Shown: positions 2,479 through 47,846, counted from the stretch's first letter. The stretch: DNA of 64,000 bases from Isurus oxyrinchus (GCA_026770705.1 JANJGN010000052.1:2108001-2172000); one strand, 5' to 3'. The notes: generated by a model from the letters alone, not told the origin. Made by a program: numbers and translations.

Positions 2479-2760
2479 ATGCACCACAGAATCTCTCAAT
2501 TACTTCTCTTGATATGATTAACGCTTCATCGATCAATATAATTGAGGGGAATTCTGCAGTGATAATCTGCTCTGTCGAGAGCTTCCCAGCTTCTAACCTG
2601 ACGTGGCGACATCTTAATGTCCCAATGAACAGAACAAGTTCCAACAATGAGCTGTGGTTGGTGATTCCTCACGTTACATCCAGGGACACTGGAGACTATC
2701 AGTGTGTGGCAGAGAATGAACATGGAGCAGTGGAGGGGTTCATAACCATCACTGTGGAAC
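2479..2760 (+). CDS. Siglec/MAG-like gene A, C2-set Ig exon (gene 5' end lies upstream of the window)
   Basis: ttttag|AT...GAAC|gtgagt, 282 nt, phase 1-1; APQNLSITSLD...IICSVESFPASNLTW...DTGDYQCVAENEHG has the Ig Cys/Trp/DxGxYxC signature. Confidence 0.9.
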
Positions 2761-2779
2761 GTGAGTGTGGAGATACATT

Positions 2780-3088
2780 TGTTTGTTTGTTGTCTCTGTG
2801 GTCTCCGTGGAGCCATTGGGATCGTGTTGTTTTTAATCCAGTTTTCTTCAATCCTCGCTCAGTCCACGTTATCCACACACCCAATTTTTCCTCTCCCTTT
2901 CTGTTTTTGCTCTCAGTTTCTCCTTCAATGGTTGTCAGGACAAGGCTGTCAGGTCTTCGTTTCCAATCTCCGTACTTGACGAACTTTCTCTCTCTAACTG
3001 CCCTGAACAACCCTTTTAATTGCTGAACTTCTCCTCTTGATCTAAGCCACTCATTGGTCTTTCTGTCCATCCAGCTGATTCTGAGCAT
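2780..3088 (-). mobile_element. RTE-like LINE 3' fragment
   Basis: LRISWMDRKTNEWL...LVLTTIEG. Confidence 0.55.
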
Positions 3089-4140
3089 CTGGCAGCATCT
3101 GTGGAGAGAAAGACAGGGTTAGCGTTTGGAGTGTGTATGACTCCTCTTCAGAGCTAAAGGGAAGTAGACATGTGGTGAAATATATCCTGTCTAAGGGGGG
3201 GGCGATGGGACAGGTGGAGCTGGATAGAAAACCAGCGATAGGTGGAGGCAATGGAGAGATTGTGGAAGATGTCATAAACAAAAGGTCAAAGGGTTGTTAA
3301 CAGTGGTGGTATTGGATAAAGGAGGTGCTAATGGTGACATTAAGCAGAGTGTGATAATGGGCGGACCAGGGTAAGCACTCTGGAAAGAGACAGATGGCCC
3401 TCGTGGGGGTGTGGCAGGGGGAGGGGACGGTGGAGGGAATAAAGATCGAAAATAGACTAAAATCTGCGGATAAAACAATCAAGAAAAATGGAAATGAATT
3501 TCAAATAGTAATAATAAAAATAAGTGGAAAACAGTTAACAAATAAAACAATTAAAATGAATACATAAAAAAAAGTTCAAAAAGCAGTGAAGATCGAGGAG
3601 AGAGTTCATGACCAGGAATTGTTGATCTCAATATTCAGTCCGGAAGGCTGTAAAGTGCCAGGTTGGAAGATGAGGTGTTGTTCCTCCAGTTTGCGTTGGG
3701 CTTCACTGGAACAATGCAGCAGGCCAAGGACGGACATGTGGGTAAGAGAGCAGGGTGGGGTGTTAAAATGGCAAGCGACAGGGAGGTCTGGGTCATGCTT
3801 GTGGACAGACCGAAGGTGTTCATCAGAGCGATCACCCAGTCTGTGTTTGGTGTCTCCAATGTAGAGGAAACCACACTGGGAGCAATGAATGCAGTAGATT
3901 ATATTGAAGGAAGTCTGCATGAAGCGCTACTTCACCTGGAAGGAGTGTTTGGGTCATTGGACAGTGAGGGGGGAGGAAGTAAAGGGGCAGGTGTTGCACC
4001 TTCTGCAAATACATGGGAAGATGTCATCGGAGAGGGTTGAGGTGCTAGGGGTGATGGAGGAGTGGACCAGGGTGTCCTGGAGGGAATGATCCCTGTGGAA
4101 TGCCAACGGGGTGGGGGTGAAGGGAAGATGCTTTTGATGG
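3085..4140 (-). mobile_element. Penelope-like element fragment (GIY-YIG endonuclease)
   Basis: NIIYCIHCSQCGFLYIGDTKHRLGDRSDEH...VACHFN...LEEQHLIF...TLQPSGLN. Confidence 0.85.
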
Positions 4141-4753
4141 TGGTCAGATTTTGTCCGAAGGAGGTGAGAAATGAGGGAGGGAATTCCAGAGGTTAGGATC
4201 CAGGCAGCTGAAGGCACGGCTGCCAATGGTGGAGCGATAGGAATCGGGGGAAGGTCAAGAGGCTGGAATTGGAGGTGCATCGAGATCTCGGAGGGTTGTA
4301 GAGGCTGGAGGAGTTTACAGAGATAAGGAAGGTTGTAGGGGCTGGAGGAGGTTACAGAGATAGAGAGGGTTGAAGCGGCTGGATGAGGTTACAGAGATAG
4401 GGAGGGTTGAAGGTTCTGGAGGAGGTTACAGAGATAGGGAGGGAGTAAGGAGGGATTTGAAACGATGTTAATTTTAAAATTGTGGTATTGTCGGACCGGG
4501 AGCCAGTGTAGCTCAGTGACCAACAGGGAGTGATGTGTGAACGGGACTCGGTGTGAGTTAGGACATGGGGACAGCAGAGTTTGGGATGAGCTGATGTTTA
4601 CGGAGAGTGGAAGATGGGAGGTCGGGCAGGAGAGTGTTGGGATAGTTGAGTGCAGAGGTAACAAAGGCAGGAATGAGTGTTTCAGTGTGAAGATTCTATC
4701 TTACGCTCTAACTTTGCTATGACGTTGTCTCATTGTTGTCCTTCCCTCCTCAG

Positions 4754-6333: not shown

Positions 6334-6430
6334 GTAGAGACTCCAGTAAATGGACAGTAGGATTGTTCACGGCTGGGATCATGTTGAGTGTTTTCCTGGC
6401 TGGAATCTTCATCTTCATCTGTGTGAGAAA
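6334..6430 (+). CDS. Gene A transmembrane exon
   Basis: ttacag|GT...AGAAA|gtaagt, 97 nt, phase 1-2; GRDSSKWTVGLFTAGIMLSVFLAGIFIFICVRK, uncharged hydrophobic helix. Confidence 0.9.
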
Positions 6431-7153
6431 GTAAGTCTGAAGATTTAACTTGATTTTAATCTAAACATTTGCTTAGGACTAATTGGACAGTTTTTACAAA
6501 AGGCCAGCACAGGCACGATGGGCTGAGTGGCTTCCTCCTAAGCTGTGAGATTTTAAATTCTTTCATCGAATGTGGCTGTCATTGGCGTGGACAATACTAA
6601 TTGCCCATTCCCAATTGCCCCTTGAGAAAGAGGTGGTGAGCTGCCTTCTTGACCCACTACAGTCTATGTGGTGTAGGTACACCCACAGTGTTGTTAGAGA
6701 GGGAGTTCCAGGATTTTGACCCAGCGACAGTGAAGGAACGGTGATATATTTCCAAGTCAGGATGGTGAGTGACTTGGAGGGGAACTTCCAGGTGGTGGTG
6801 TTCCCATGTGTCTGCTGCCCTTGTCCTTCTAGATGGTAGAGGTCGTGGGTTTGGAAGGTGCTGTTGAAGGAGCCTTGCTGAGTTGCTGCAGTGCATCTTG
6901 TAGATGGTACACACACTGCTTCCACTGTGTGTTCGTGGTGGAGGGAGTGAATGTTTAATGTGGTGGATGGGGTGTTGATCAATCGAGCTGCTTTGTTGTG
7001 GATGGTGTCAAGCTTCTTGATTCTGTGCTTTGTGCAGAAGTGATTTAAAGAGACAGTCCCAGTCATTGGTGTAAGCTAACAGTGGGCTCTGTGTCTGTGC
7101 TGCACTGACTCTCTGCTATATGATAACCACAGTGTGATATTGTGTTATTGCAG

Positions 7154-7235
7154 GAGAAAGACAGCGATGGAGGAGAGAGTTTCAGGGACCAGTGACATTG
7201 CATTGAGCCCCAGTTCACTCTCTGTGAAGCACCAG
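7154..7235 (+). CDS. Gene A cytoplasmic exon 1, tail copy A
   Basis: ttgcag|G...CAG|gtacag, 82 nt, phase 2-0, fits the TM exon; RKTAMEERVSGTSDIALSPSSLSVKHQ. Confidence 0.8.
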
Positions 7236-7370
7236 GTACAGGAGCTGTTTACACTCACTCCAAAGCTTCAATCTCAGTGTGTAGACAACACGTGTCCCAG
7301 ATTCCCAGCCCAGTTACCCACTGATTTGTACCTGTGGAGTCAGCAATGTTTCAGTATCATGCTGTCTCTC

Positions 7371-8125
7371 TGTTATGACACAGCAACTGGTAAAGACTGT
7401 TGTTTAAAATCCCAGAGGGAAACTTTAAACAACTGTCATAACCTATATTTCCCAGTGGAATGTTTGAGATGCAGCTCTAAATTCAGGAATAAGACCACCA
7501 GTTCTCGAGATGGTTTTATATCAAACTACATGAGCCATTTATTAATTAACACAAGTTAAACATATGCACATGGCTACAAACTAGTATTATCATAACTTTT
7601 TAACAAATTCCCAAACTAATCTCCTCTAAGATAACCCATAGAATTTAAGCAGACACCCAGGCAAAGCATTTTCACCTCACAAATTCCAAATGAGGTTCCT
7701 TTCACTTTGGTTCCTTTGCAGACAGGTGTAGGCTTACAGCTGCTTTGATGTTACAAGCCTCTGCTCTGCACACACAAAACTGCTCAAGTTATACCCAGCT
7801 CTTCTCTTTGAATGTAAATTCTAATTGTATCATCAGGACCTTTGATCTCCATCTCTTTTCACAATAAATCCTCTGTCATAGTATCAATTTTATCAATAAA
7901 ATAAATGTTGATTGGTTTAAGATTTCACTCTCAGGCGTTGAATGCTCTGTTTAAAAATACAAATTTTTATGCCTCAGTTTACATCTCAAAACTACTATAC
8001 ATCAAATACCCAGACTGGCTGGCTTTAATCCAATTAAAACACACAGAGACACACCCACAGACTAAACCCCGATGTGAATAAAAATAATTTCCAATAACAT
8101 GATATTTATTAATCGCATCATGACA
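7371..8125 (-). mobile_element. Solo-LTR-like insertion (duplicated at 10357-11290)
   Basis: TGTTATGA...TCATGACA inverted termini; reverse-complement similarity to 12322-13273 and 18255-19429. Confidence 0.55.
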
Positions 8126-8701
8126 GTCTCTCTCTCTATCCCAACCTCCCTTTCTTTCTCTCTCTCTCTCTTTCTCTCTCTCTCATCCTCTCTCTGATTA
8201 CAAGGTGCATGTTAATGAGCTTCACACCAGACACTTGAGTGCAGAATCCAACTGTCACTCACCAGAACCATTACCGAGGGAGTGCAAGACTGACAGAGGG
8301 TCAGTACTGAGGGAGTGCTGCACTGTCAGAGGGTCAGTACTGAGGGAGAGCTGCACTGTCAGAGGGTCAGTACTGAGGGAGTGCTGCACTGTCGGAGGGT
8401 CAGTACTGAGGGCGAGCTGCACTGTCGGAGTGTCAGTACTGAGGGAGCGCTGCACTGTCGGAGGGTCAGTAATGAGGGAGCGCTGCACTGTCGGAGGGTC
8501 AGTACTGAGGGAGTGCTGCACTGTCGGAGGGTCAGTCCTGAGGGAGCGTTGCACTGCCATAGGTGGTATCTTTCATATGACATGAGAGAGAGGGTTAAAC
8601 CAACTGAGACACGACTGACATTAACAAGGCTGCACAATAATTTAACCCTATCAGTGCCAGTAAATGATGTGAGGATAACTTCTGTTTCGATTTCTCTGTA
8701 G

Positions 8702-8950
8702 GGTAAACAGAACGTGCTGATTACTGAGCCCCAGAACACAAAGAGAGACGCAACTGGCGAGGGGGAGACCCCAGCTCCCTGGGGTCTCTCTGAAGATGCA
8801 ATGGGAGGCGATGTTGGACATGGGAACCCTGACAAACCTGAAGATTTTCTCTACGCCAATCCCCAAGTCTTGAGGATGTCCAGTGGTGATGGGTCTGTCC
8901 ACAGGGAAGTGGAGACGGAATACGCACAGATCAGGTTCGAGCATAACTGA
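8702..8950 (+). CDS. Gene A terminal cytoplasmic exon, tail copy A (degenerate ITIM FLYANP + ITSM TEYAQI)
   Basis: ctctgtag|GGT phase 0; GKQNVLITEPQ...EDFLYANPQVLR...ETEYAQIRFEHN*; AATAAA at 9517-9522. Confidence 0.85.
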   Translation, partial: GKQNVLITEPQNTKRDATGEGETPAPWGLSEDAMGGDVGHGNPDKPEDFLYANPQVLRMSSGDGSVHREVETEYAQIRFEHN

Positions 8951-10139
8951 ATGAGAAATGGGGAGAGTGAGTGAGGAGGTATGGGGGTGGGGGTAGTGAT
9001 TGAGATTCCTGGGAACAGGAAACACCCACTGGGGGAGAGGGAGAGAGAGGGAGGAAGGGATGGAATTGGGCTGCGGTTGGTGTGGTTTGGAATGAAATGC
9101 TTCTCCAGAGAGGACTGGATGCTGAGCCATTGGGGATAGAGATTCACTGTCTTTCTCTCTCTCTCTCTCTCTCTCCCTCTCTCTCTCGCTCTCTCCCTCT
9201 CTCTCTCTCTCTCTCTCCCTGTCTCTGTCTTTCTTTCTGTGTCTGTCTCTCATTCCCTATCTCCAGCTCCTCCTTTAAGATGCCCGTTAATAACTGACTT
9301 TGTTGACTCAGCTGTTGGTCTCCTGTCCCTAATATCTCCTCATGTGCCTCAGAGTCAGGTGAAGATGTCACTAACAATCCCCAGATGAGCCTTAGGACAT
9401 TTTGCTACATTGAAGGTGCTATATAAATGCAAGTGGTTGTAGTAACTCTGATCTGCTTCGATTAACAATAGAACCACAAAGGCTCCTTCGACAGGGAGTG
9501 TGTGCAGCAGGGTCACAATAAATACATTGAGCTGTGAGATTTTTAATTCTTTCATCGAATGTGTCTGTCACTGGTGATGTCAGCATTAATGCCCATCCCT
9601 AATTGCCCTTGAGAAGGTGGTGGTGAGCTGCCTTCTTGACCCGCTGCAGTCCATGTGGTGCAGCTACACCCAAAGTGCTGTTAGAGAGGGAGTTCCAGGA
9701 TTTTGACCCAGCGACAGTGAAGGAACGGTGATATATTTCCAAGTCAGGATGGTGAGTGACTTGGAGGGGAACTTCCAGGTGGTGGTGTTCCCATGTGTCT
9801 GCTGCCCTTGTCCTTCTAGATGGTAGAGTTCGTGGGTTTGGAAGGTGCTGTTGAAGGAGCCTTGCTGAGTTGCTGCAGTGCATCTTGTAGATGGTACACA
9901 CACTGCTGCCACTGTGTGTTCATGGTGGAGGGAGTGAATGTTTAATGTGGGGGATGGGGTGTAGATCAATCGGGCTGCTTTGTCCTGGATGGTGTCAAGA
10001 TTCTAGATTCTGTGCTTTGTGCAGAAGTGATTTAAAGAGACAGTCCAGTCATTGGTGTAAGGTTACAGTGTGCTCTATGTCTGTGCTGCACTGACTCTCT
10101 GCTATATGATAACCACAGTGTCATATTGTGTTATTGCAG

Positions 10140-10221
10140 GAGAAAGACAGCGATGGAGGAGAGAGTTTCAGGGACCAGAGACATTGCATTGACCCCCAGT
10201 TCACTCTGTGTGAAGCACCAG
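10140..10221 (+). CDS. Gene A cytoplasmic exon 1, tail copy B
   Basis: Near-identical copy of 7154-7235 with intact cag/gtacag sites; RKTAMEERVSGTRDIALTPSSLCVKHQ. Confidence 0.75.
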
Positions 10222-11781
10222 GTACAGGAGCTGTTTACACTCACTCCAAAGCTTCAATCTCAGTGTGTAGACAACACATGTCCCAGATTCCCAGCCCAGT
10301 TACCCACTGATTTGTATCTGTGGAGTCAGCAATGGTTCAGTATCATGCTGTCTCTCTGTTATGACACAGAAACTGGTAAAGGCTGTTGTTTAAAATCCCA
10401 GAGGGAAACTTTAAACAACTGTCATAACCTATATTTCCCAGTGGAATGTTTGAGATGCAGCTCTAAATTCAGGAATAAGACCACCAGTTCTTGAGATGGT
10501 TTTATATCAAACTACTTGAGACATATATTAATTTACACAAGTTAAACATATGCACATGGCTACAAACTAGTATCATCATAAATTTTTAACAAATTCTCAA
10601 ACTAATCTCCTCTAAGACAACCCATTATCTTTAAGCAGACACCCAGGCAAAGCATTTTCACCTCACAAATTCCAAATGAGGTTCCTTTCACTTTGGTTCC
10701 TTTGCAGACAGGTGTAGGCTTACAGCTGCTTTGATGTTACAAGCCTCTGTTCTGCACACACAAAACTGCTCAAGTTATACCCAGCTCTTGAGTGTAAGGA
10801 AGACGGAGATTGATGGGCTCTTGATTGGTCAGGGGATCAAAGGTTAGGAGAGAAGGTGGGAGAATGGGGTTTGTGAAACATATCAGCCATGTATGAATGG
10901 TGGAGCAGACTCGATGGACCGAATGGTCTAATTTCTCCTCCTATATCTGATGGTCTTATGGCTTCTGTTTGAAGGTAAATTCGCAATGTATCATCAGGAC
11001 CTTTGAACTCCATCTCTTCCAATAATAAATCCCCTTTCATCGTATCAATTTTATTAGTAATATAAACGTTGATTGGTTTAAGATTTCACTCTCAGGCATT
11101 TAATGTTTTATTTAAAAATGCAAATTACCACTTTACCTCTTTGTTTACATCTGAAAACTACTATACATCAAAGCACCCAGACTGGCTGGCTTTAATCCAA
11201 TTAAAATACACACAGACACACACACAGACTAAACCTCTGTTTAAAAAGACAGTTTGCATTTATAATACAAACATTAATAGATTAATAACACTCTGTCTCT
11301 GTCCCTCCTCTCTCCCTCTCTCTCATCCTCTCTCTGATTACAAGGTTCATGTTATTGAGCCTCACACCAGGCACCTGTGTGCAGATTCCAAGCCATCACT
11401 CACCAGAGCCATTACCGAGGGAGTGCTGCACTGTTGGAGGGTCAGTACTGAGGGAGTGCTGCACTGTTGGAGGGTCAGTACTGAGGGAGTGCTGCACTGA
11501 CAGAGGGTCAGTACTGAGGGAGCGCTGTATTGTCGGAGGGTCAGCACTGAGGGAGTGCTGCACTGTCAGAGGGTCAGTATTGAGGGAGTGCTGCACTGTT
11601 GGAGTGTGATAGAGATTAAATTATAAAGAGAGAGAGAAAGCGAGAGAGACAGAGAAAGAGAGTGAAAAAAAGGGTTAAACCCACTGAGATACGACTGACA
11701 CTAATGAGGCTGCACAATAATTTAACCCTATCAGTACCAGTAATTGATGTGAGGATATCTTCTGTTTCCATTTCTCTGTAG

Positions 11782-12030
11782 GGTAAACAGAACGTGCTGA
11801 TTACTGAGCCCCGGAACACAACCAGAGACACAACTAGTGAGGGGGAGACCCCAGCTCCCCGGGATCTCTCTGAAGGTCCAGTGGGAGGCGATGTTGGACA
11901 TGGGAACCCCGACAATCCCGCCAAGCTTCTCTACGCCAACATCAACTTTTCAAAGCTGCCCGGCGGTGACAGGACTGTGCACAGGAGCGAGGACACGGAA
12001 TACGCACAGATCAGGTTCCAGAAAAACTGA
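11782..12030 (+). CDS. Gene A terminal cytoplasmic exon, tail copy B (ITIM LLYANI + ITSM TEYAQI)
   Basis: ctctgtag|GGT phase 0; ...PAKLLYANINFSKL...DTEYAQIRFQKN*, the classic Siglec ITIM plus ITSM-like pair. Confidence 0.85.
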   Translation, partial: GKQNVLITEPRNTTRDTTSEGETPAPRDLSEGPVGGDVGHGNPDNPAKLLYANINFSKLPGGDRTVHRSEDTEYAQIRFQKN

Positions 12031-12223
12031 GTGTGAAACAGGGAGCGGGGCTGTGGGGTGTGTGCAGCCAACATGGCCAAATAGTAATGAACAGAAATAT
12101 GATGTTGCTCAACTTTTTTTTATTGGTTCTGAGTGAGCTTTCTGAATGCTGCACCTTTTTCCATGCTGTAAAAGATTGTGAGAAGCTTATGAATTATGTA
12201 TAATTTAACATCTGTTAATACAA

Positions 12224-20212: not shown

Positions 20213-20257
<45 letters not shown>

Positions 20258-20470: not shown

Positions 20471-20564
20471 GTACAGGAATACTCTATTTATTTTGAGCTA
20501 ATGATATATAATTATACATGAGGCATGTTGCTAATTTCAAATGTCATCTGAAATATGGCAGGTC

Positions 20565-21899: not shown

Positions 21900-22088
21900 T
21901 GGGTTAACACTGACCCTCCTCCCAGAGCCAGTTCACCTCGTGTCCGATGCAGTCAGGAGAGGAAGATCATCTCTCCTCCGATCCTGGTAAACTGAACATT
22001 TCCAGAATTAGATCAGCTCCCTGAAGTGTCTCCAGTTAGACATTCATCTGACAGGATTGACTCTACGACCCTGGGGACTCATTCTCCT
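21900..22088 (+). promoter_or_regulatory. Candidate promoter and 5' non-coding exon of gene B
   Basis: Strong donor CT|gtaagt at 22089; GAGGAAG ETS-like motif; the gene B leader exon begins with an acceptor (tttag at 25091-25095), so an upstream exon is expected; start coordinate approximate. Confidence 0.4.
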
Positions 22089-29215: not shown

Positions 29216-29473
29216 ATTCTCCTCACAACACGTCTGTCAGGCTGACACTGGAAAAAGGAAAGGTGATTTCTCTAAGTTGTTCCAGTGACGGGAATCCAGC
29301 AGTCCACAATTTCACCTGGTTTAAGATCTCCCAAGGAAAGATGACGAATCTCGCGCTCGCTGGTCAAACTATTACAGTTCCTTATGGATTCGATGAGGAA
29401 ATCTCCTACTACTGTGAAGCAACAAGTATCCTGGGCAGTTCCCAGTCTCTGCCCATTAGAATTCCCACTGAAT
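29216..29473 (+). CDS. Gene B Ig domain 3 (C2)
   Basis: gaaag|AT...GAAT|gtgagt, 258 nt; SPHNTSV...ISLSCSSDGNPAVHNFTWFK...SYYCEATSILG, CD22/sialoadhesin-like C2. Confidence 0.9.
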
Positions 29474-33115: not shown

Positions 33116-33134
33116 TGGTCTTATGGTCTTATCA

Positions 33135-34020
33135 CCCTCCAACAGTGCAGATCTCCCTAATTACTGATCCTCCGACAGTGCAGCACTCCCTCAGTACTGA
33201 CCCTCCGACAGTGCAGCACTCCCTCAGTACTGACCCTGCAACAGTGCAGCACTCTTCCAGTACTGACCCTCCGACAATGCAGCACTTCCTCAGTAATGAC
33301 CCTCCGACAGAGCAGCACTCCCTCAGTACTGAACATCTGACAGTGCAGCAATCTTCCAGTCCTGACCCTCCGACAGTGCAGCATTCTTCCAGTACTGACC
33401 CTCCGACAGTGCAGCATTCCCTCAGTACTGACCCTCCGACAGTGCATCACTCCCTCAGTACTGACCATCCAACAGTGCAGCACTCCTTCAGTACTGACCA
33501 TCTGACAGTGCAGCACTCCCTCAGTACTGACCATCCAACAGTGCTGCACTCCCTCAGTACTGACCCTCTGACAGTGCAGTACTCTCTCAGTACTGACCCT
33601 CTGACAGTGCAGCACTCCCTCAGTACTGACCCTCTGACAATGCAGCACTCTCTCAGTACTGATCCTCCGACATTGCAGCACTCCCTCAGTACTGACCATC
33701 CAACAGTGCAGCACTCCATCAGTACTGAACCTCCAACAGTGCAGCACTCCCTCAGTACTGACCATCCAACAGTGCAGCACTCCCTCAGTACTGACCATCC
33801 AACAGTGCAGCACTCCCTCAGTACTGACCCTCCGACAGTGCCGCACTCCCTCAGTACTGACCATCCAACTGTGCAGCACTCCCTCAGTACTCATTCTCCG
33901 ACAGTGAAGTACTCGCTCAATACTGACTATGCGGCAGTGCAGCTTTCACAGTACCCACCCTCCAACAGTGCAGCACTCCCTCAGTACTGACCCTCCGACA
34001 GTACAGCACTCCCTCAGTAC
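33135..34020. repeat. 33-bp satellite array
   Basis: Same unit. Confidence 0.95.
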
Positions 34021-34154
34021 TGAGCTGTAGTGACTGCCTGAATTAAGTGCTTTGTGGTGAAGGAACCTACATTGATATCAGACCTTTCACATTCTCAGTG
34101 TCTCTCAAAGCGTTTCACAGACAATGTAAGTAACTGATCTTTATTTGTTTTCAG

Positions 34155-34436
34155 ACACACCACAGAATCTCTCAATTAATTCTCTTGATATGATTAACGT
34201 TTCATCGATCAATATAATTGAGGGGTATTCTGCAGTGATAATCTGCTCAGTCGAGAGCTTCCCAACTTCTAACCTGACGTGGCGACATCTTAATGTCCCA
34301 ATGAACAGAACAAGTTCCAACAATGATCTGTGGTTGGTGATTCCTCACGTTACATCCAGGGACACTGGAGACTATCAGTGTGTGGCAGAGAATGAACATG
34401 GAGCAGTGGAGGGGTTCATAACCATCACTGTGGAAC
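34155..34436 (+). CDS. Gene B Ig domain 4 (C2)
   Basis: tttcag|AC...GAAC|gtgagt, 282 nt; near-identical to 2479-2760. Confidence 0.9.
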
Positions 34437-34915
34437 GTGAGTTACACAGACTTCAACAACTCTCTCAGATTTGAACACATATACATAAATGCACTCCCAC
34501 ACGCACTCACTGCACTGGAGTCTTGGTGTCAGCTCCAATTCTGGATGGAACGAAGGTAAACTCCAGATCAACAAGACCCTGAATTGGATGACCAAACTCC
34601 TGAACAGTGAATTGTAGATTTACCCCTCAGTGCTCCATCAATCAAATACAATTCATTGCCTGTAAAGGCTTGGCGAAATCCTGAGGATGTGAATGAAAGT
34701 TTCTTTCATTCTAGATTGATAGCACCTCAACTGGTGGGGGAATGCAACTGCAGTGTGACAGTTTACATAGGCAGTGTCCATTATAAATGTGACAGAGGAA
34801 CTTATGCTGAGGAAGGTGCCTGGAATTGTATTCAGACATCAGATACGGAGAGATGATACATGGAGTCTTGATGTGCATTGTGCTTGCTCACTCTAAAATC
34901 TTTATATGTTTTTAG

Positions 34916-35197
34916 ATGCTCCACAGAACCTCTCAATTACTTCTCTTGATATGATTAACGCTTCATCGATCAATATAATTGAGGGGAATTCTAGAGTGAT
35001 AATCTGCTCTGTCGAGAGCTTCCCAGCTTCTAACCTGACGTGGCGACATCTTAATGTCCCAATGAACAGAACAAGTTCCAACAATGAGCTGTGGTTGGTG
35101 ATTCCTCACGTTACATCCAGGGACACTGGAGACTATCAGTGTGTGGCAGAGAATGAACATGGAGCAGTGGAGGGATTCATAACCATCACTGTGGAAC
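34916..35197 (+). CDS. Gene B Ig domain 5 (C2, tandem duplicate of domain 4)
   Basis: ttttag|AT...GAAC|gtgagt, 282 nt; only a handful of substitutions versus 2479-2760. Confidence 0.9.
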
Positions 35198-35224
35198 GTG
35201 AGTTACACAGAATTGAACATTCTC

Positions 35225-36270
35225 TTGTTATTAGCTCATGGGATGTGGGCATTGTTGACAAGGCCAGAAATTATTGCCCATCTGTAACTGCCCCTTGAGA
35301 AGGTGGTGGTGAGCTGCCTTCTTTAACCACTGCAGTCCATGTGGTGTAGGCACACCAACAGTGCTGTTAGGGAGGGAGTTCCAGGATTTTGACCCAGCGA
35401 CGGTGAAGGAACGGCCGATATAGTTCCAAGTCCCAGGGCAGACCACCACCTCATGTTGATTTCCAAGTCACACACCTCACTGACTTGGAACTCTCTTGGT
35501 GGAAGAGGTTAAGGGTTTGGAAGGTGCAGTCGAAGAAGCTTTGGTGAGTTGCTGCAGTGCATCTTGTAGATGGTGCATACACTGCTGCCATTGTGTGCCA
35601 GTGGTGGAGGGTATGAATGTTTATGCTGGTGGATGGGCTGTTGATCAAACAAGCTGCTCCTGGATGGTGTCGAGCTTCTTGAGTGTTGTTGGAGCTGCAC
35701 TCATCCAGCCAAGTGGAGATTATTCCATCACAATCCTGACTTGTGCCTTGTCGATGGTGGACAGGCTTTGGAGAGTCAGGAGGTGAGTTACTCACCGCAG
35801 AGTTCCCAGCCTCTTACCCGCTCTTGTAACCACATTATTTCCTGTTGCCGGGTTGTTGCCAGGGCCAATAGCCTTTGCTGTATCCAGTATCATCAGCTGA
35901 TTCCTGATGTCACGTGGAGTCAATCGAATTGTCTGAAAGCTGACATCTGTGATGCTGGGACCCTCTGGAGGAGGCCGAGATGGAGCATCCACTCAGCACT
36001 TCTGGCTGAACATGGTTGCCAATGCTTCAGCCTTGTCGTTTGCACTGATGTGCTGAGCTCCCCCATCATTAAGGATGGGGATATTTGTGGAACATCCTCC
36101 TCCTGTTAGATCTTTAATTGCCCATCACCATTCATGACTGGATGTGGCAGGACTGCAGAGCTTAGATCTGACCCGTTGGTTGTGGGATCGCTTTGCTCTG
36201 TCTATAGCATGTTGTTTCCGCTGTTTGGTGTGTATGTAGTCCTGTGTGTCACCTCAGCAGCTTGGCACCC
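35225..36270 (-). mobile_element. LINE fragments (same family as 12224-14320)
   Basis: Reverse complement of the 3' region seen at 13760-14300; further copies at 6560-7020 and 9550-10000. Confidence 0.75.
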
Positions 36271-36463
36271 CTGTTATATGTGAATCCTCCTTATAGAAAC
36301 CTGCATGTACATGGATATTATCAATAAATATTACATAGATAAATGTTATTTGTATAGACCTTTCATGCATAGACAATATCACTTCACAAGTTCAGAATTA
36401 CTACATGTACATAGGGAACCATTCTCAAACTATACCGGAGTCATTCATTGGCTGATTTTACAG

Positions 36464-36560
36464 GGCGAGATTCCAATGAATGGAAAGCAGGATTGCTTGG
36501 AGCTGGAATCTGTTTGAGTGTTGGACTGAGTGGATTCTTCATCTTCAAGTGTGTGAGAAA
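36464..36560 (+). CDS. Gene B transmembrane exon
   Basis: ttacag|GG...AGAAA|gtaagt, 97 nt, paralogous to 6334-6430; RDSNEWKAGLLGAGICLSVGLSGFFIFKCVRK. Confidence 0.88.
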
Positions 36561-37124
36561 GTAAGTGTGAAGGTTTAATTGGTTGTTTTCGAAAATGTTT
36601 TCTTCAACCTTCTCTCCTTATAGAAAGAACTTGCATTTCTATAGCACCTTTTACAATCCAAAACCCTTCACAGCCCCTGAAGAGTTTTGATGTTCACCTA
36701 CTGTTTCACATCTCATCCAACACTCACTGTTTCACAACTCAGTCCTGTAACTGGCAGTGTTGACCCGGACCATAAAATACCTTGTGACCTCCTGAGTTTG
36801 TGAAAGGTGCGATATAAATGAAAACCTTTCTTTTGTTAGTGAATACAATCCCTTTCCTTTTTCCATGTTTCATTCACTCTCTCTTATCTCCACTAATGCA
36901 CGCCTTCTCATTCTCTCTCATTCACTCTCTCTCCAATCTCCACTAATGCTCTCCTTCTCATTCTCTCTCTCGTCCTCTTACACAATGTTCAGTCTCTCAC
37001 ATTTTTAAGGAGTGCTGAGCTACATCTGCTCCTTCAGAAGATCCACCTCAACACCTGGATTGAGCAGTGAATTGAAACTCGCTCACCGACTGCTCAGCTT
37101 TACACAGGAATCACGTCACAGAGT

Positions 37125-37520
37125 CAGGACACAAAGGGTTAACAGTTTGCTTACAACACAACACTAAGGCCCAACGTTTCAATGAAAGGGTTTTCACAAT
37201 TGTTCCCCAATTCCTGATTTGACTCACAGAGAGACATCCACCCTTTCTCATTAAATACACAGAGGGAGCAGCACAGGAAGAGGTCATTCAGCCCAAGCAG
37301 AGCGTGTGGGCAGTTCCTCCCCAGGCGAGCAGTCGGACAGGTACTGGGTAAGTAACGGAACGATTGGAATTCACTTCCACCACCAACACCGTCCTTTGTT
37401 GATGTTGTGACTTTATAAAGACAGATTCCAATGATTGATGCCTTTGAAAGATTTCTACTGATTATTGAGATCTGGGTGTGAGGCTCAAGTCTGTTGTACA
37501 GAACATCTTTCTGGTTAAAT
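37125..37520 (+). promoter_or_regulatory. Promoter/first-exon module copy 1 (inside the gene B intron)
   Basis: Near-identical to 43594-43970; TGACTCA, CAGGAAG, donor gtaagt at 37348. Confidence 0.55.
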
Positions 37521-37863
37521 TATGCAGACAGGTTACACACAGTCTACGATTATATTCACTCGGGTCTAGAAGATTAAGGAGGGATCTAATTGAGAGTTTC
37601 AAACTGATTAAACACTCGATAGGGTCGATAGAGAGAAGCTATTCCCTCGGGTGGGGGTGGGTGGTGGGGGTCGGGTGGAGTCCAGAACAAGGGGGCTGGA
37701 ACTTCAGATTGGAGCCAGGCCGTTCAGGGGTGATGTCAGGAAGCACTTCTTCACACAAAGGGGAGTGGAAATCTGGAACTCTCTCCCCAATAATCAAACC
37801 CAACACCGAATACACATCATGTTGATTGTCATTCTGTCCATTTCCATCTCTATTTCGGAAGAG

Positions 37864-37963
37864 AGGTGAGGGGAAAGCAGGAATCAAATCGAACCACCGT
37901 GTTGATGAATATCGAGGTCCTGTTTATGAAAACTGTGAGCGTGGTTGGGCTTTGAGGAATCAG
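37864..37963 (+). CDS. Gene B candidate cytoplasmic exon 1 (VYENC)
   Basis: GEGKAGIKSNHRVDEYRGPVYENCERGWALRNQ|gtgagt; a pyrimidine tract precedes it, but the expected acceptor reads tatttcgg; the in-phase alternative is a weak gag at 37861-37863. Confidence 0.55.
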
Positions 37964-38094
37964 GTGAGTCACACACCACAGGATCCCCAGCCTCTCAGCT
38001 GCTCCAGTAGCCTGGTTATTGATATGGCTGCTCCAGTCCTGTATCTGCAATGTTTTATACAGTCACTCCCAAACCCAACCAAACTCACACCCAA

Positions 38095-39670
38095 CACCAT
38101 TCAGAATCAATAATCAAACCCCGATCAGAATCAATAATCAAACCCCGTTCAGAATCAATAATCAAACCCCGTTCAGAATCAATAATCACACCCCGTTCAG
38201 AATCAATAATCAAACCCCGTTCAGTATCAATAACCAAACTCCGTTCAGTAACAATAATAAAACCCGTTCAGAATCAATAATCAAACCCCGATCAGTATCA
38301 ATAATCAAACCCCGTTCAGAATTAATAATCAAACCCCTTTCAGAATCAATAATCAATCCCCGTTCAGTATCAATAAACAAACCACGTTCAGTATCAATAA
38401 TCAAACCCTGTTCAGAATTAATAGTCAAACCCCTTTCAGAATCAATAATCAATCCCCGTTCAGTATCAATAAACAAACCCAGTTCAGAATTAATAATCAA
38501 ACCCCGTTCAGAATCAATAATCAAACCGCGTACAGAATCAATAATCAATCCCCGTTCAGTATACATAATCAAACCCCGTTTAGTATCAATAAACCAACCC
38601 CGTTTAGTATCAATAATCAAACCCCTTTCAGAATCAATAATCAATCCCCGTTCAGTATCAATAAACAAACCCCGTTCAGAATTAATAATCAAACCCCGCT
38701 CAGTATCAATAATCAAACCGCGTTCAGAATCAATAATCAAACCCCGTTCAGTATACATAATCAAACCCCGCTCAGTATCAATAATCCAACCCCGTTTAGT
38801 ATCAATAATCAAACCCCATTCAGAATCAATAATCAAACCCCTTTCAGAATCAATAATCAAAACCGAGTTCAGAATCAAGAATCAAACACCGTTCAGTATC
38901 AATAATCAAACCCCGTTCAGAATCAATAATCAAACACTGTTCAGAATCAATAATCAAACCCCATTCAGTATCAATAATCAAACTCCGTTCAGGATCAATA
39001 ATCAAACACCGTTCAGAATCAATAATCAAACCCCGTTCAATATCAATAATCAAACCCCGTTCAATATCAATAATCTAACTTCGTTCAGGATCAATAATCA
39101 AACCCCGTTCAGATTCAATAATCAAAACCCTTTCAGAATCAATAATCAAACCCCATTCAGTATCAATAATCAAACCCCGTTCAGTATCAATAATCAAACC
39201 CTGTTCAGAATTAAAAATCAAACCTGTTCAGTATCAATAATCTAATCCCTTCAGAATCAATAATCAAACCCCGTTCAGAATTAAAAATCAAACCCCGTTC
39301 AGTATCAATAATCTAACCCCGTTCAGTATTAAAAATCAAACCCCGTTCAGTATCAATAATCTAACCCCGTTCAGTATCAATAATCAAACCCCATTCAGTA
39401 TCAATAATCAAACCCCGTTCAGAATCAATAATCAAACCCTGTTCAGTATCAATAATCAAACTACGTTCAGGATCAATAATCAAACTCCGTTCAGATTCAA
39501 TAATCAAAACCCATTCAGAATAAATAATCAAACCCTTTTCAGTATCAATAATCAAACCCCGTTCAGAATTAAAAATCAAACCCCGTTCAGAATCAATAAT
39601 CAAACCCCGTTCAGAATTAAAAATCAAACCCCGTTCAGTATCAATAATCAAACCCTGTTCAGTAACAATA
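38095..39670. repeat. 24-bp minisatellite in the last intron of gene B
   Basis: tcagaatcaataatcaaaccccgt tandem units. Confidence 0.95.
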
Positions 39671-39770
39671 ATTAATGTATCTACTGTGGATGGAATTTTT
39701 GATTTGGATCAATAATACTAAACACTGATCACTCTGATTGTCACTCTGATCATTTCTGTTTCTATTACAG

Positions 39771-39887
39771 AAGAAAGATGAGAAGGATCTGGAAATGAAA
39801 TCTAACCGCGGAGTCAATCCTGATACAGATGATGATCTTTACGCAAACTGTGAATTTGCCAAGGATTCTGTTTATGGGAATTTATAA
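39771..39887 (+). CDS. Gene B candidate terminal cytoplasmic exon (LYANC...SVYGNL*)
   Basis: tctattacag|AAG phase 0; KKDEKDLEMKSNRGVNPDTDDDLYANCEFAKDSVYGNL*; AATAAA at 40662-40667. Confidence 0.75.
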   Translation, partial: KKDEKDLEMKSNRGVNPDTDDDLYANCEFAKDSVYGNL

Positions 39888-42949: not shown

Positions 42950-43175
42950 CAAAGGGTTAACAGTTTTCTAACTGTGCGAGGCAAAGAGCATCTTTCTCAC
43001 TTGGTACCAAGCACTTCCTCATTTTGACTCACAGTGACACATCCACCCTTTTTAATTAAACACAAATAGGGAGCAGCACAGGAAGAGGTCATTCAGCCCA
43101 AGCAGAGCGTGTGGGCAGTTCCTCCCCAGGCGAGCAGTCGGACAGGTCCGGGGTAAGTAACGGAATGATTGGAAA
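42950..43175 (+). promoter_or_regulatory. Promoter/first-exon module copy 2
   Basis: CACTTCCTCATTT (PU.1-like) next to TGACTCA (AP-1) at 43012-43031; donor at 43153. Confidence 0.55.
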
Positions 43176-43593
43176 TCAAGGGGGGAGTTCTGAGGTCTCC
43201 TAATGCATTGTCCTGTCTTGTAAATCAGCACCTTAATACTGACCCTTCAACAGTGCGGCACTCCCTCAGTACTGATCCTCCAACATTGCAGCACTCCCTG
43301 ATTAATGTCCCTCTGACAGTGCAGCACTCCCTCAGTACTCACCCTCAAACAGTGGAGATCTCCCTCAGTACTGACCTTACAATAGTGCAGTAATGACCAT
43401 CCGACAGTGCAGCACTCCCTCAGGACTGACACTGGGCAGTTTCAGTCTACTCTGTGGGGCAGACGTCCCCTGAATGGGGTCTTGAATCCCACAACATTCT
43501 GACCCCCTGAATTTGGCTGTGAAACCCACTGACCCACAGGAGAAACTCCTGGTCAATGACTGTCCACCTGTGAGCAGAAATATCAACACAGGG

Positions 43594-43970
43594 TCAGGAC
43601 ACAAAGGGTTAACAGTTCACCAACATCTCAAAACATGAGCTGGTCTGTCACTTTGATCCAACTTCCTCATTTTGACTCACAGACACACATCAACCCTTTC
43701 TCATTAAATACACAGAGGGAGCAGCACAGGAAGAGGTCATTCAGCCCAAGCAGAGCGTGTGGGCAGTTCCTCCCCAGGCGAGCAGTCGGACAGGTCCTGG
43801 GTAAGTAACGGAACGATTGGAATTCACTTCCACCACCAACACCGTCCTTTGTTGATGTTGTGACTTTATAAAGACAGATTCCAATGACTGATGCCTTTGA
43901 AAGATTTCTACTGATTATTGAGATCTGGGTGTGAGGCTCAAGTCTGTTGTACCGAACATCTTTCTAGTTC
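43594..43970 (+). promoter_or_regulatory. Promoter/first-exon module copy 3 (likely gene C promoter)
   Basis: ACTTCCTCATTTTGACTCA 43661-43679; donor gtaagt at 43801; next acceptor tttcacag at 44210 opens the leader exon. Confidence 0.6.
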
Positions 43971-44992
43971 AAGGGATGAGGGAAGTGCAGAGACATGAGC
44001 TTTGGGATGCCCTGAGGTGGTGAAAGGTGCTATAGAAATGCAAATCCTTCATTGTTGGTCTTTCTTAAAGCCTTGTAACTCTCTGCAGAGCACCTATCAT
44101 CCCACAGAGAATCAAATTAGTCTGTGAAGACATTGTCTAAAAGCAGTTCTGATCTCTCGAGAGCTGTCGGACAAGAGGTGAGGTCTCATTAACTCCTTTC
44201 TCTTTCACAGCTTGAGAGTGAGAAGTGGATGGAATATCTGGGAGTGGACAATGATCGGGAAATCTACTTCCTCTTGTCACTTCTCCAAGGTAATATCATC
44301 GTCAGCTTGGACAGATTTATATTTAACAGTCTTTGTAAAAGATCATTCTTATCTCTTTATCTCTGTAACCTCCTGCAATGCAACCAATCAACTTCCCAGA
44401 TCTCTGTGTTACTCCACTTCTGGCCTCTTGACCATCCCCCAATTCCCATCACTCCAATACTGGCGGCCGTGCCTACAGCTGCCTGGGACCTGAGCTCTGG
44501 AATTCACTCCCTAAACCTCAGCGATGGAGGAGATCAGAGGGTTTCATTTTACTGAGAATCACCACGACCACATCACAGCTGCAGTGAGAATAGACAGAGA
44601 GTCCAGCCCTCACACTTCCTGCACAGTTTCACCATAGCAACCACAATATGGAAATTTAAAAATACTGAAAGTTAAACTGAAGCTCAGCCCATTCAGTGTT
44701 GAGAGATGAGATATTTACACAGTTTCCCTGTGTATCTTGTAGACACTGTGTTGGATGGAAGACTGGCTTCACTAAACAGGGTCCTGAGGACCATGAGCCA
44801 ATGTAGAATGAACTTGTCCACTCCTGTGTCCAGGATTCTCTTCTATCTGTTGTGAAACCTTGGGGAGTTCCTTGTGTGTCCTGTAGATGGTCCACACTGC
44901 AGCCACTGTGCCCCAGTGATGGAGGGGGTGGATATCGAGTCTAGTGGATCTACAAACCATCCAGAGTCAAATATTGATATTTCTCTCCCCCG

Positions 44993-45366
44993 TTGGACTG
45001 TCACAAGAGTGGAAAGGTGACACTCCACGAGAGGTGACAGCACAGGAAGGTTCATGTGTACAGATTCCATGTCATTACAGTTACTTATCAAATTTCGTAG
45101 GGAGATCACGTGCAGAATCTGGTTGAAAGGAATAGATGGGAACCCACAGCCGAAATGGTCTATAGCCTTTCACTCCGAGGGTCACAATCACAGGGATCAA
45201 AGATTCCGCCATCGTACCCGGCTGTCTGGAGACCTGAAAGATGGCGACTGTTCCCTGATTATAAACAACATCAGACGGGAAGATGCAGGACCTTATTTTT
45301 TCAGAATAGAGTTTGACAGCAGGAATAGTTACAGCTACTATCCTGTAACCCAGCTTGACGTTTCTG
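44993..45366 (+). pseudogene. Gene C V-set exon with intact sialic-acid-binding Arg
   Basis: GLSQEWKGDTPREVTAQEGSCVQIPCHYSY / frameshift / IWLKG...FRHRTRLSGDLKDGDCSLIINNIRREDAGPYFFRIEFDSRNSYSY; 374 nt (3n-1), donor G|gtaagt. Confidence 0.85.
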
Positions 45367-45889
45367 GTAAGTGCTGTGTTATAATTACTCAACAATTCAC
45401 ATCCAACACTCAATGGGAAATAACACAAACTGTGACGTTTACATAATAACACAAAACACAGCTTATTATAACACACTGTCTGATTCTCAATAACCTGGTG
45501 ATAGCTTCCAGTTCAGTCCTAAAGCAACCTCTAAAAATCACTTTAATATCAATGATGAAAAGCATTAACTGTACCGACATCTTTCATTCTACATCAGCAC
45601 TCCCTCAGCACTGACCCTCTGACAGTGCAGCCTGTTCTCAGTATCCACATTCTCAGGCCACTCAAAGTGCTTCACAGTCGATAGAAGTTAATTGATCTTT
45701 ATATGATTATTGCTGAATGAAGAGACAAGCTGTCTAAACTTCTCATATCGCAAACAGCATTCTCCACGGCAACACCTCCACCTATCAGAGACCACTTGCC
45801 AACCAATCAGCACTGTCTTTCCATTAAGTATAAATTGTTGTTCACTTTCTGTTGGTAATCGTGCAAACGGGGTTCTTGATTCCTGCCAT

Positions 45890-46042
45890 GACATCTGAAT
45901 GTCCAAATGAACAGAAGAAGTTCCAACAATGAGCTGTGGTTGCTGATTCCTCACGTTACATCCAGGGACACTGGAGACTATCAGTGTGTGGCAGAGAATG
46001 AACATGGAGCAGTGGAGGGGTTCATAACCATTACTGTGGATT
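45890..46042 (+). pseudogene. Truncated copy of the shared C2 exon
   Basis: HLNVQMNRRSSNNELWLLIPHVTSRDTGDYQCVAENEHG...|gtgagt; acceptor and 5' half replaced by unrelated sequence at about 45706-45889; upstream intron matches 34087-34146. Confidence 0.85.
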
Positions 46043-47706
46043 GTGAGTGTACACAGACATCAACATCTCTCTCAGATTCGAATACTACACAAACACCCTC
46101 AAACGTACAGACCTAAATAGACACGTGCAGACACACATATATGACCACACACAAAGACACACTCACAAACAAACACACTAGCACAAGACTCCCTCATGGG
46201 TTACCTGACCTCCCTCAGTACTGCACTGGAGCGTGGGCTGAATTCTGGGATTTGTGTTCCCATTCATATTTATAGAAGAATATGGAAATTACTCATACAA
46301 ACACTCAGATGCATAGAGGCACTCATAGATACTCTCTGCTTCTCCAACTCTCTCTCTCCCTTTAAGGAGCTACCTGAAACCTAACCCGTTGACGAATAAC
46401 TAGTCCCAACTCCTCTTTATCTGATTCTGTGATTTTTTTGTGAATCTGAGAGTAAGAGAGAGGTGGAGAGGTTTAGTAAGAGAATTCCTGCTGATGAAAA
46501 GCTTACATCCTGTTCTCACTATTTCTGTGCCCATTATGTCCAAAGCCCCTGTTTATAGTGATGACTGCCTATGTAAACGTCACACTGTAGTTACAGCCTC
46601 CCACCAGTGGTGGCATTGTAGCACTTAATCCTTGTGTTTCCCAGCTTTTCAAGCAAATCTACTTCCCAGTTTGCTACACAAGCTGGGAGTTCATCGGAAT
46701 TCAATTATTTCTCAAACGGTAGATTTGATAATTCATTTTATTGAAAACTTCCTCAGTGCCTCCCTGAAGGGTTTACACTCTCCGGGTGGCAGGAATAGGC
46801 TGGATGTTGGGGAGTTCATCTTTTCCCTGAGAGTAGTGATCCTCGGGAATGTGCTGTCAGTGGGTGTGGTGGTTGCTGTCTCTCTGTTGCCTTCAAGAGG
46901 GATCTGGAGTGGTTACTGACTGGGGGAGAGATCATGGAAGCGGAGAATGATACAGCACAGGAGGAGGCCATTCAGCCCATTGTGCCTGTGCCAGGTCTTT
47001 CAATGTTCTATCCAATCAGATCCACTAACCACTACTCCACTTTGCCCCCATCTTCCTCCTTCAAGTGTTTATCCAATTTCCCTTTTGAAAGTTCCTATTG
47101 AATCTGCTTCCACCGCCCTTTCAGGCAGCACCTTCCAGATCACAACAACTCGCTCTGTCAAAACAAATTCTCCTCATCTCCCCCTCCGGTTCATCAATCT
47201 GTGTCCCTCTGGTTACTGACCCTCCTGCCCCTTAAATACATCGATACTGTTCACCTCAACCACTCCCTGTGGGAGTGAGTTCCACATTCTCCCCTCTCTC
47301 TGGGTAAAGATTGGAACTGTTTATTAAGCGGGGGGGTGTATGTCCGTGGGGGAGTCCATCTCGATCCTGCCCGATTCACACACACGTCCGAGATGGATTT
47401 CCACCCTGCACTAAACGTTTCCAGAATTTTCTACAGCACAATCCTGTACACAGCGATGGAGAGAAACATTGGACAGGGAGTCCAACAGCACAATGATCCA
47501 TTCTCACCAATGTTCCACGCTAAGGGGAAAGTTCCGATTGTCCACTCTTAGAGTGTTTACAATGAAAACATTCATTCCACATTGAATCCCAGTGGATGGG
47601 TCAATATTACAGCAAATGTTGCAGTGATATGAAGCTTGATTGTTCAGCCAGAGTGAGAGATTGAAAGCGGAGAGTCAGTGATGATTTCTTTCTGTATGTT
47701 CTCTAG

Positions 47707-47846
47707 ACAGTGGAGGAGAGATTCTGCACGTGATCCTGATCCTGGGAATACGAGCTGTGATATTCCTTGTGGCTGTGGTTATCACTATCGCTGGAGTCTG
47801 TGTCTGGGAGAGACAAACAGTGAAAGGAAGTCGACAGACTGTTTAA
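47707..47846 (+). CDS. Gene C TM and short tail exon with intramembrane Arg
   Basis: ctctag|AC phase 1; SGGEILHVILILGIRAVIFLVAVVITIAGVCVWERQTVKGSRQTV*; AATAAA at 48828-48833. Confidence 0.8.

Follow-up and report, generated by a model that had tools for sequence, protein, structure and literature searches.

We analysed a stretch of 64,000 nucleotides (nt) of the Isurus oxyrinchus genome (GCA_026770705.1 JANJGN010000052.1:2108001-2172000; the whole of this stretch is called the window below), in which positions 2479-47846 hold a cluster of three genes for Siglec-type receptors, here named A, B and C. All coordinates of the three genes are on the plus strand. The GC content of the window is about 45%, and it contains fragments of long interspersed nuclear elements (LINEs), many minisatellites and five runs of N. 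The best protein matches were those of the basking shark (Cetorhinus maximus), which reach 92% over the V-set exon of gene B, followed by other sharks, skates and sawfish. Pfam searches recovered immunoglobulin (Ig) domains in each proposed Ig exon and a V-set domain in both head exons. The Ig exons have the phase 1-1 layout that is usual for Ig domains, with AG/GT borders throughout except in gene C, and a scan for hydrophobic spans on the plus strand gave three transmembrane (TM) exons, at about 6.3, 36.5 and 47.7 kb. The exons of the cluster are real; they were searched singly, and for A and B the joined frames served only to count length and stop codons. Polyadenylation hexamers in the window were uninformative.

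Gene A is partial in the window, its 5' end lying upstream of it. The two cytoplasmic tails read below carry an immunoreceptor tyrosine-based switch motif (ITSM) and, in one case, an immunoreceptor tyrosine-based inhibitory motif (ITIM). The exons of gene A are:

2479-2760, plus strand: C2-set exon C2x, phase 1-1; Pfam Ig_3 at 9e-13; shares 87% of residues with Mustelus P0015, and 66% with Pristis P0145
4754-5047, plus strand: membrane-proximal Ig exon resembling MAG domain 5, phase 1-1
6334-6430, plus strand: TM exon without a charged residue, phase 1-2; 69% identical to basking-shark P0014
7154-7235, plus strand: cytoplasmic exon cyt1, phase 2-0; matches P0014 residues 288-329
8702-8950, plus strand: tail cassette 1, with FLYANP (ITIM lost), TEYAQI (ITSM) and a stop codon; 56% identical to P0014
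10140-10221, plus strand: duplicated cytoplasmic exon cyt1', splice sites read
11782-12030, plus strand: tail cassette 2, with LLYANI (ITIM), TEYAQI (ITSM) and a stop codon; 83% identical to P0014

The order C2x-Ig-TM-tail equals that of sawfish P0145 and catshark P0009, and is also matched by P0014, the basking-shark orthologue of gene A, which starts with a leader and two tandem V domains. The membrane-proximal Ig exon is 63% identical to its counterpart in catshark P0009; the values for sawfish P0145 and for gecko MAG (P0056) are 57% and 40%. The two tails belong to a cassette duplication (6541-12045) in which 6541-7803 and 9530-10789 are 95% identical. Its divergence is uneven, with 95% identity over the first 1.26 kb, which includes cyt1, 82% over the next part and 85% over the tail exons; each of the three possible exon joinings keeps the frame open to the stop. 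Because tail 1 is so much less similar to P0014 than tail 2 (56% versus 83%), and because dN/dS between the two tails is 1.0, tail 1 looks like a duplicate under relaxed constraint. Tail 2 is the conserved cassette, and tail 1 a diverging duplicate without ITIM. Gene A holds a Siglec-type domain set, with Ig_3/I-set exons, a TM exon and both ITIM and ITSM in tail 2. Tail 2 (LLYANINFSKL...TEYAQIRFQKN) shares both tyrosine motifs with L-MAG of gecko and frog (YANIDFTK...EYAEIRVK; YANIDFTKL in gecko) and has the same motif layout as a typical CD33-related Siglec tail (LHYASLSF...TEYSEIRTQ). Judged by these motifs, the tail of gene A is of the MAG/CD33 type.

The exon model of gene B is as follows:

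21947-21985, plus strand: possible 5' exon, matching basking-shark P0007
25095-25155, plus strand: leader exon with ATG at 25110, MGEVGLILIFISLLQ; matches P0007, donor read
25976-26332, plus strand: V-set exon (Pfam V-set) with YYFYVD; 92% identical to basking-shark P0001
28420-28707, plus strand: C2 exon a (C2a); 86% identical to P0001, splice sites read
29216-29473, plus strand: C2 exon b (C2b), present as a single copy in the window
34155-34436, plus strand: C2x copy 1, with Pfam match and splice sites
34916-35197, plus strand: C2x copy 2, 98.2% identical to the C2x of gene A
36464-36560, plus strand: uncharged TM exon, phase 1-2; 78% identical to P0049 and 72% to P0005
37263-37347, plus strand: cytoplasmic exon cytX, phase 2-0; has counterparts in the cytoplasmic regions of P0005 and P0049
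37862-37963, plus strand: tail exon T1, with VYENC; 50% identical to P0005 residues 558-589
39771-39887, plus strand: tail exon T2, with LYANC...VYGNL and a stop codon; 41-61% identical to the tails of P0002, P0003, P0005 and P0049

Joined, the model comprises 10 exons and 1914 nt, with 637 codons, no internal stop, fitting phases and GT-AG at every junction. The zebra-shark protein P0005 (626 residues) reads V-C2a-C2b-C2b-C2x-TM-cytX-T1-T2 and thus has the same module order as gene B. The basking-shark orthologue of gene B (P0001/P0152) starts with V-C2a as well, and continues with eight tandem repeats of C2b, against the one exon in the window, an Ig domain resembling MAG domain 5, a different TM exon and T2 in another frame. 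Since this orthologue ends in T2, V and T2 lie in one transcription unit in the basking shark.

The tail of gene B carries three YxN motifs (VYENC, LYANC and VYGNL), YxN being the preferred site of Grb2-type SH2 domains. Its last two tyrosines have a spacing like that of the immunoreceptor tyrosine-based activation motif (ITAM), but the first of the two has Cys at +3, and hence there is no canonical ITAM in this tail. A C-terminal YxN...[IV]YxN[VILM] was found in 25 of the 220 retrieved Siglec-like proteins, from sharks, stingray, turtle, monitor lizard and teleosts (P0003, P0005, P0008, P0010, P0049, P0089, P0100 and P0181 among them). The presence of this ending in teleosts and reptiles indicates an old tail type rather than a shark invention; no discussion of it as a conserved class was found in the literature searched. 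Four shark proteins use the tyrosine frame of T2; the basking-shark models named 'CD22-like' use another frame, which gives KRKMRRIRK-stop. Direct splicing of the TM exon to T2 in the window would give K-RKMRRIWK-stop, and the tail could thus be switched off by exon skipping. A 24-bp minisatellite of 66 copies (38093-39672) takes up the intron that separates the related exons T1 and T2.

Gene C consists of four recognisable exons:

44211-44289, plus strand: leader exon, one base missing after 44264, so that MIGKS and YFLLSLLQ lie in two frames
44993-45366, plus strand: V-set exon with the Arg kept (YFFRIEFD), acceptor CG, one base missing after 45112; 75% identical to the first V domain of P0014
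45890-46042, plus strand: 3' part only of a C2x exon, 153 nt, with a stop codon just before it
47707-47846, plus strand: TM exon with an Arg inside the hydrophobic span, then a tail of 12 residues without tyrosine and a stop codon; intact, with a good acceptor

The TM exon translates as ILHVILILGIRAVIFLVAVVITIAGVCVW, followed by the tail ERQTVKGSRQTV and the stop (SGGEILHVILILGIRAVIFLVAVVITIAGVCVWERQTVKGSRQTV as a whole). At 80% identity it matches the end of P0016, a cloudy-catshark protein with two heads, two C2x domains and this same TM-Arg module, which also ends P0221. A search for the module among proteins of 356-1132 residues returned only two catshark proteins, a result that, given its length window and word index, is no measure of how widely the module is spread. 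The remainder of gene C bears four lesions, namely the base lost from the leader, the CG at 44991-44992 in place of the V-exon acceptor, the base lost within the V exon, where the frame changes, and the truncation of C2x, which has no usable acceptor. Gene C therefore reads as a pseudogene in this assembly.

These three endings had been described in an initial annotation of the window as three different signalling outputs. The ITIM/ITSM tails assigned to gene A hold for the ITSM, which is in both cassettes, but for the ITIM in tail 2 only. The tail of gene B, described as triple-YxN and ITAM-like, has the three YxN motifs and falls short of the ITAM pattern. The intramembrane Arg and short tyrosine-free tail of gene C are found in an intact exon, but the gene that carries this exon is broken.

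Upstream of gene C we observed two further copies of cytX (43068-43147 and 43716-43800), near-identical to the 85-nt exon of gene B, and the region 37207-37516 is 96.8% identical to 43658-43969. The exon is coding in the tails of the zebra-shark and bamboo-shark proteins. In RNA-like contigs from two species, 43800 is joined to the exon with the C-type leader ATG, at about 44211; here cytX would serve as 5' untranslated region, or the contigs would be read-through chimeras.

The V-domain heads place the cluster within the Siglec family. Against solved structures, the V domain of gene B scored best with MAG (6e-15), sialoadhesin (7e-12) and Siglec-5 (5.5e-11), with the first non-Siglec at 5e-6. 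The V fragment of gene C separates Siglecs from antibodies poorly, and the intact basking-shark orthologue was used for the A/C-type head. Its best matches were Siglec-5, -7, -8, -10 and CD33 (1e-14 to 1e-11), and seventeen Siglec chains preceded the first non-Siglec at 3.6e-6. CD22 was absent from the solved-structure matches of both head types at E < 1e-4. In trees of 269 and 90 V domains, whose reference names derive from automatic annotation, the B-type and A/C-type heads formed two elasmobranch-only clades with support of 100 and 99, and the A/C clade stood beside 'CD22-like' heads of paddlefish and sturgeon (support 87). A sister link between the V domains of gene B and MAG, with support of 88 in FastTree, was rejected, as the better-modelled IQ-TREE did not resolve it. 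No grouping with CD33-related Siglecs was seen in the tree, where P0108, P0068 and P0063, recognised by their tail motifs only (LHYASL...TEYSEIR), fell apart from both shark clades. Nor was one-to-one orthology with MAG found: the best identity to gecko MAG was 24-33% for each retrieved shark protein, and gene B is without the Arg. Structure searches thus put both head types among Siglecs, as the initial annotation had proposed for the V domains. The Siglec cysteine pattern, C-x4-C near the start of the V domain plus NCS on the E strand, can be read in gene B as SCVVIPC and NCSV, and in gene C as SCVQIPC and DCSL.

The two head types differ at the sialic-acid arginine. When the V domain of gene B was aligned to MAG over 102 residues, a Tyr stood opposite Arg118 (YYFYVD). 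YYFY was present in 10/10 members of the B clade, which span lamniform, carcharhiniform and orectolobiform sharks as well as skates and a sawfish, while all 13 sequences of the MAG clade have YYFR. As every B-clade member has Tyr for Arg, the loss is old and conserved and not a recent defect. The canonical Arg is kept in gene C and in most A/C-type heads. The V domain of gene C is 75% identical to the first V domain of the basking-shark A-type protein, and within the window, which does not include the V exons of gene A, only C2x can be compared between A and C. Among the tandem V domains of the stingray proteins P0012, P0181, P0183 and P0184, some have Lys (YYFK) or Ser (YTFS) in place of the Arg, whose loss therefore extends beyond the B-type head.

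The C2x exon is 95-98% identical among its full-length copies (A-B2 277/282, A-B1 274/282 and B1-B2 269/282), and the part that remains in gene C is identical at 146/153 positions. This similarity ends at the exon. The 300 nt upstream of C2x are 84% identical between A and B2 and barely alignable in the other pairs, the downstream flanks are not alignable, and identity between the homologous TM exons of genes A and B is about 78%. The difference between C2x and the upstream intron was significant (Fisher p = 4e-10), and at third codon positions only 3/93 sites differ between the C2x exons of A and B2. Since the near-identity is confined to the exon, it fits short-tract gene conversion or a very recent exon transfer better than plain conservation, gene conversion being the process that the initial annotation had named for mammalian Siglec pairs. 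The accompanying claim that three genes share this exon is true of A and, twice over, of B; in C it extends only to the 3' 153 nt.

The modules of the cluster recur in other elasmobranchs in different combinations. Bamboo-shark P0049 has an A/C-type head followed by the TM, cytX, T1 and T2 modules of the B type; zebra-shark P0005 has a B-type head on these same modules; and catshark P0016 joins A/C-type heads to C2x and the TM-Arg module. Modules have thus been recombined between genes and species, which bears out the proposed exon shuffling. Module for module, the automatic protein predictions of elasmobranchs follow the same order as the genes in the window, with 56-92% identity per exon:

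Cetorhinus: XP_078389725 and XP_078389734
Stegostoma: XP_048379657
Scyliorhinus torazame: XP_072326180
Pristis: XP_051901447
Chiloscyllium: GCC37911

All these relatives are computer models with inconsistent names (Siglec-8, -12, -13, MAG-like, CD22-like, sialoadhesin-like and pIgR-like), and no paper on Siglec pairs of sharks, or analysing the elasmobranch models, was found in the literature searched. The cluster had been called a lineage-specific system. This agrees with the elasmobranch-only clades of both heads, but not with the tails, as the YxN tail also occurs in teleosts and reptiles.

Several observations weigh against reading the cluster as three neighbouring genes with the structures given above. 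The models of A and B are derived from sequence, and the proteins of other species that support them are themselves automatic predictions. We infer that A and B are neighbours, but four of the five assembly gaps fall between the end of the last exon of A (12030) and the first gene B exon match (21947), and their adjacency therefore rests on scaffolding. The gaps are:

1797-1948: inside a gene A intron, upstream of the C2x exon
16316-16639: between A and B
17444-17741: between A and B
17908-18225: between A and B
21522-21676: between A and B

Three of the five border CA/TG-rich simple sequence. None of the five touches an exon or exon-like match, and the reading frames are independent of them; genes B and C, together with a hepcidin exon described below, lie in a single gap-free stretch (21677-64000). 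Within gene B, C2b and the first C2x copy stand on either side of a 4.7-kb intron that contains a LINE and a minisatellite, and a relaxed tblastn search of 29474-34154 found neither a hidden Ig exon resembling MAG domain 5 nor a second TM exon. In addition, the ancestral acceptor of T1 is mutated to CGG, although an AG 3 nt downstream keeps the phase. Gene B might accordingly be two things, with V-C2a-C2b (25976-29473) an orphan 5' fragment and C2x-C2x-TM-cytX-T1-T2 (34155-39887) the headless 3' remnant of another member; the Arg-less head would then never be coupled to the YxN tail in this species. The basking-shark orthologue with the 92% identical V domain would fit such a split, since it runs from C2b into an Ig domain and a TM exon that are both missing from the window, as would the LINE between the halves, which has reverse-transcriptase open reading frames (ORFs), and the frequency of rearrangement in the cluster, where C is truncated and the cytX exon triplicated. 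We nevertheless consider a split gene unlikely, because the phases fit and the joined frame is open for 637 codons, no other leader or V exon was found upstream of 34155, zebra-shark P0005 has exactly the same module order, and the basking-shark gene ends in T2 as well. We infer from these points that the two halves form one gene.

The meaning of the tails and the state of gene C can also be read in other ways. Three distinct outputs are predicted from the motifs; alternatively, the YxN tail of gene B could be inhibitory or adaptor-binding, like the Grb2-binding tyrosine of CD22, with a last motif that is ITIM-like, and with gene C dead the window would encode dampening receptors only. Grb2 at CD22 helps to recruit SHIP, which would favour this alternative, but YxN motifs also amplify activation in other receptors. 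The lack of a canonical ITAM in gene B is in its favour, too, and so is the wide occurrence of the same C-terminal [IV]YxN[VILM] among Siglec-like proteins of fish and reptiles that carry a CD22-like annotation. SVYGNL, moreover, fits the ITIM pattern [S/I/V/L]xYxx[I/V/L] (PMC7226832), although the -2 position of this last motif is variable and is Ala in P0005 and P0049. On balance we hold a purely dampening window to be possible but doubtful. Another suggestion would be that gene C is intact in the animal, its frameshifts being assembly errors or the property of one allele, and that the window holds a working activating partner. It draws on contigs of public runs, aligned on 42950-48000 at 90% likeness and mostly paralogous or repeat contigs. 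Among the contigs from a DNA run of this species, an extra T after 44264 and after 45112 occurs as a minority variant and supplies the base missing at both frameshift sites; RNA-like runs of this and a related species also have the extra T, and show the splices 44289 to 44993 and 43800 to about 44211, neither of which joints is present in the DNA run. The RNA-like contigs are spliced transcripts of the gene C type, the source of which may be paralogues or an intact allele; in a multigene family and at 90% likeness, contigs cannot be assigned to this locus. Two of the four lesions may therefore reflect an intact allele or assembly error, and this weighs against the pseudogene reading, as do the intact TM-Arg exon with its good acceptor and a contig of a related species that covers this exon and has unlike sequence at its 5' end, as in spliced RNA. 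Yet paralogues can explain the contigs, the variant is a minority in the DNA run, and the CG acceptor and the lost 5' half of C2x with its stop are not such types of error, which makes an intact gene C quite improbable.

The cluster is flanked by an exon that serves as a marker of synteny:

55347-55463, minus strand: hepcidin-like mature-peptide exon, Pfam PF06446 at 29.3 bits against a cut-off of 27; CRFCCHCCNWRESNETCGICCIF

This exon places the cluster next to hepcidin; in human, HAMP, MAG and CD22 are presumably neighbours. The initial annotation had related the cluster to MAG and CD22. For MAG this agrees with the tail and last Ig domain of gene A and with the hepcidin neighbour, but the link between the B-type and MAG V domains did not hold, and CD22 did not appear among the structure matches. 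A 33-bp minisatellite family occupies at least nine places on both strands, in introns and between genes, and gives long spurious ORFs (STDPPTVQHSL...):

8272-8556: 33-bp minisatellite
11413-11604: 33-bp minisatellite
20563-21283: 33-bp minisatellite
23177-23897: 33-bp minisatellite
26465-26824: 33-bp minisatellite
33134-34023: 33-bp minisatellite
49176-49430: 33-bp minisatellite
55929-56227: 33-bp minisatellite
58245-58483: 33-bp minisatellite

Arrays of a 37-bp unit lie in opposite orientation at 58546-59919 and 62593-63290, with a short copy at 4290-4443.

The cluster as first observed is partly confirmed, in that gene C has half of the shared exon and is broken, one tail of gene A keeps its ITIM, and gene B has two C2x exons. 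Its interpretation is partly supported: the genes belong to the Siglec family, they are elasmobranch-specific and their modules are shuffled. The pairing of the heads, the three outputs, the unity of gene B and the relation to CD22 are unproven. The whole is probably best explained by a large elasmobranch family of Siglec-type receptors built from interchangeable exon modules, with genes A, B and C as read here. The window would be one edge of this elasmobranch-only gene family, beside hepcidin. Gene A would be the 3' part of an inhibitory receptor in which engagement of a ligand leads to phosphorylation of the tail-2 ITIM (LLYANI) and ITSM (TEYAQI), and the phosphorylated tail would recruit SHP-type phosphatases, as in mammalian CD33-related Siglecs. 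Gene B would combine a head of the old Arg-less lineage with two C2x domains, an uncharged TM segment and the three-YxN tail; judging from the missing Arg, the ligand of this head is probably not sialic acid bound in the canonical manner. Gene C would represent an activating-type member, whose TM Arg would find its partner in an acidic residue of an adaptor with an ITAM, such as DAP12 or FcR-gamma. The near-identity of C2x would be maintained among the genes by short-tract gene conversion, or reflect very recent exon transfer. A bolder proposal, in which we place little confidence, is that the cluster next to hepcidin preserves a tool-kit ancestral to the genomic region of MAG, CD22 and the CD33-related Siglecs (an ITIM+ITSM tail of MAG/CD33 type, a YxN tail in common with Siglec-like genes of teleosts and reptiles, and a TM-Arg module), freely recombined with two old heads of which one became Arg-less before sharks and rays split, and that T2 is read in two frames depending on the inclusion of cytX and T1, so that splicing would switch the YxN tail to a short tyrosine-free one.

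Paired inhibitory and activating Siglecs have been described in mammals, and in the primate pairs Siglec-5/14 and Siglec-11/16, parts of the ectodomain are near-identical between the inhibitory and the activating member, which is attributed to gene conversion. The shark cluster resembles these pairs in its tandem genes, in the opposition of a tail with ITIM and membrane-distal ITIM-like motif to a basic TM residue with a short tail, and in an ectodomain part that is kept near-identical. It differs in that, as far as the window shows, homogenisation affects a C2 exon of the stalk and not the V domain, in the third (YxN) tail type, in the tandem duplication of heads in the orthologues, and in the broken state of the activating-type copy. 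Of the paired inhibitory/activating system that had been proposed, the module with a basic TM residue and short tail is thus found, and is kept in P0016 and P0221, but the member that should carry it in the window is broken. Compared with CD33-related Siglecs, the shark V domains do not group with the sequences that have such tails, sequences known by their tail only. With MAG (Siglec-4) the cluster shares the last Ig domain of gene A, 40% identical to gecko domain 5, the best structural score of the B-type V domain and the position beside hepcidin; overall identity is, however, only 24-33%, gene B lacks the counterpart of Arg118, domain numbers differ, and a multigene family stands against a single conserved gene. 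With CD22 (Siglec-2) it shares a YxN (Grb2-type) tyrosine among the tail motifs, and NCBI names the basking-shark orthologue of gene B 'CD22-like'; but CD22 was not recovered in the structure searches, and the Ig domains do not number seven.

According to a study of fish Siglecs, Siglec-1, CD22, MAG and Siglec-15 are regularly present and CD33-related Siglecs are said to be lacking; this study deals with teleosts only and does not mention cartilaginous fish (PMC7226832). In a paper on the whale-shark genome, Siglecs appear a single time, as a list entry (PMC8455134). The value of the present window is limited by the broken activating copy and by the existing predictions of such proteins from other sharks. 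A non-canonical ligand is suggested by the conservation of the Arg-less head. If our reading is true, the tail of MAG and the CD33-type tail would be linked to one ancestral module, and the shark cluster, whose tails follow the same logic, would date the paired design to the origin of jawed vertebrates or earlier.

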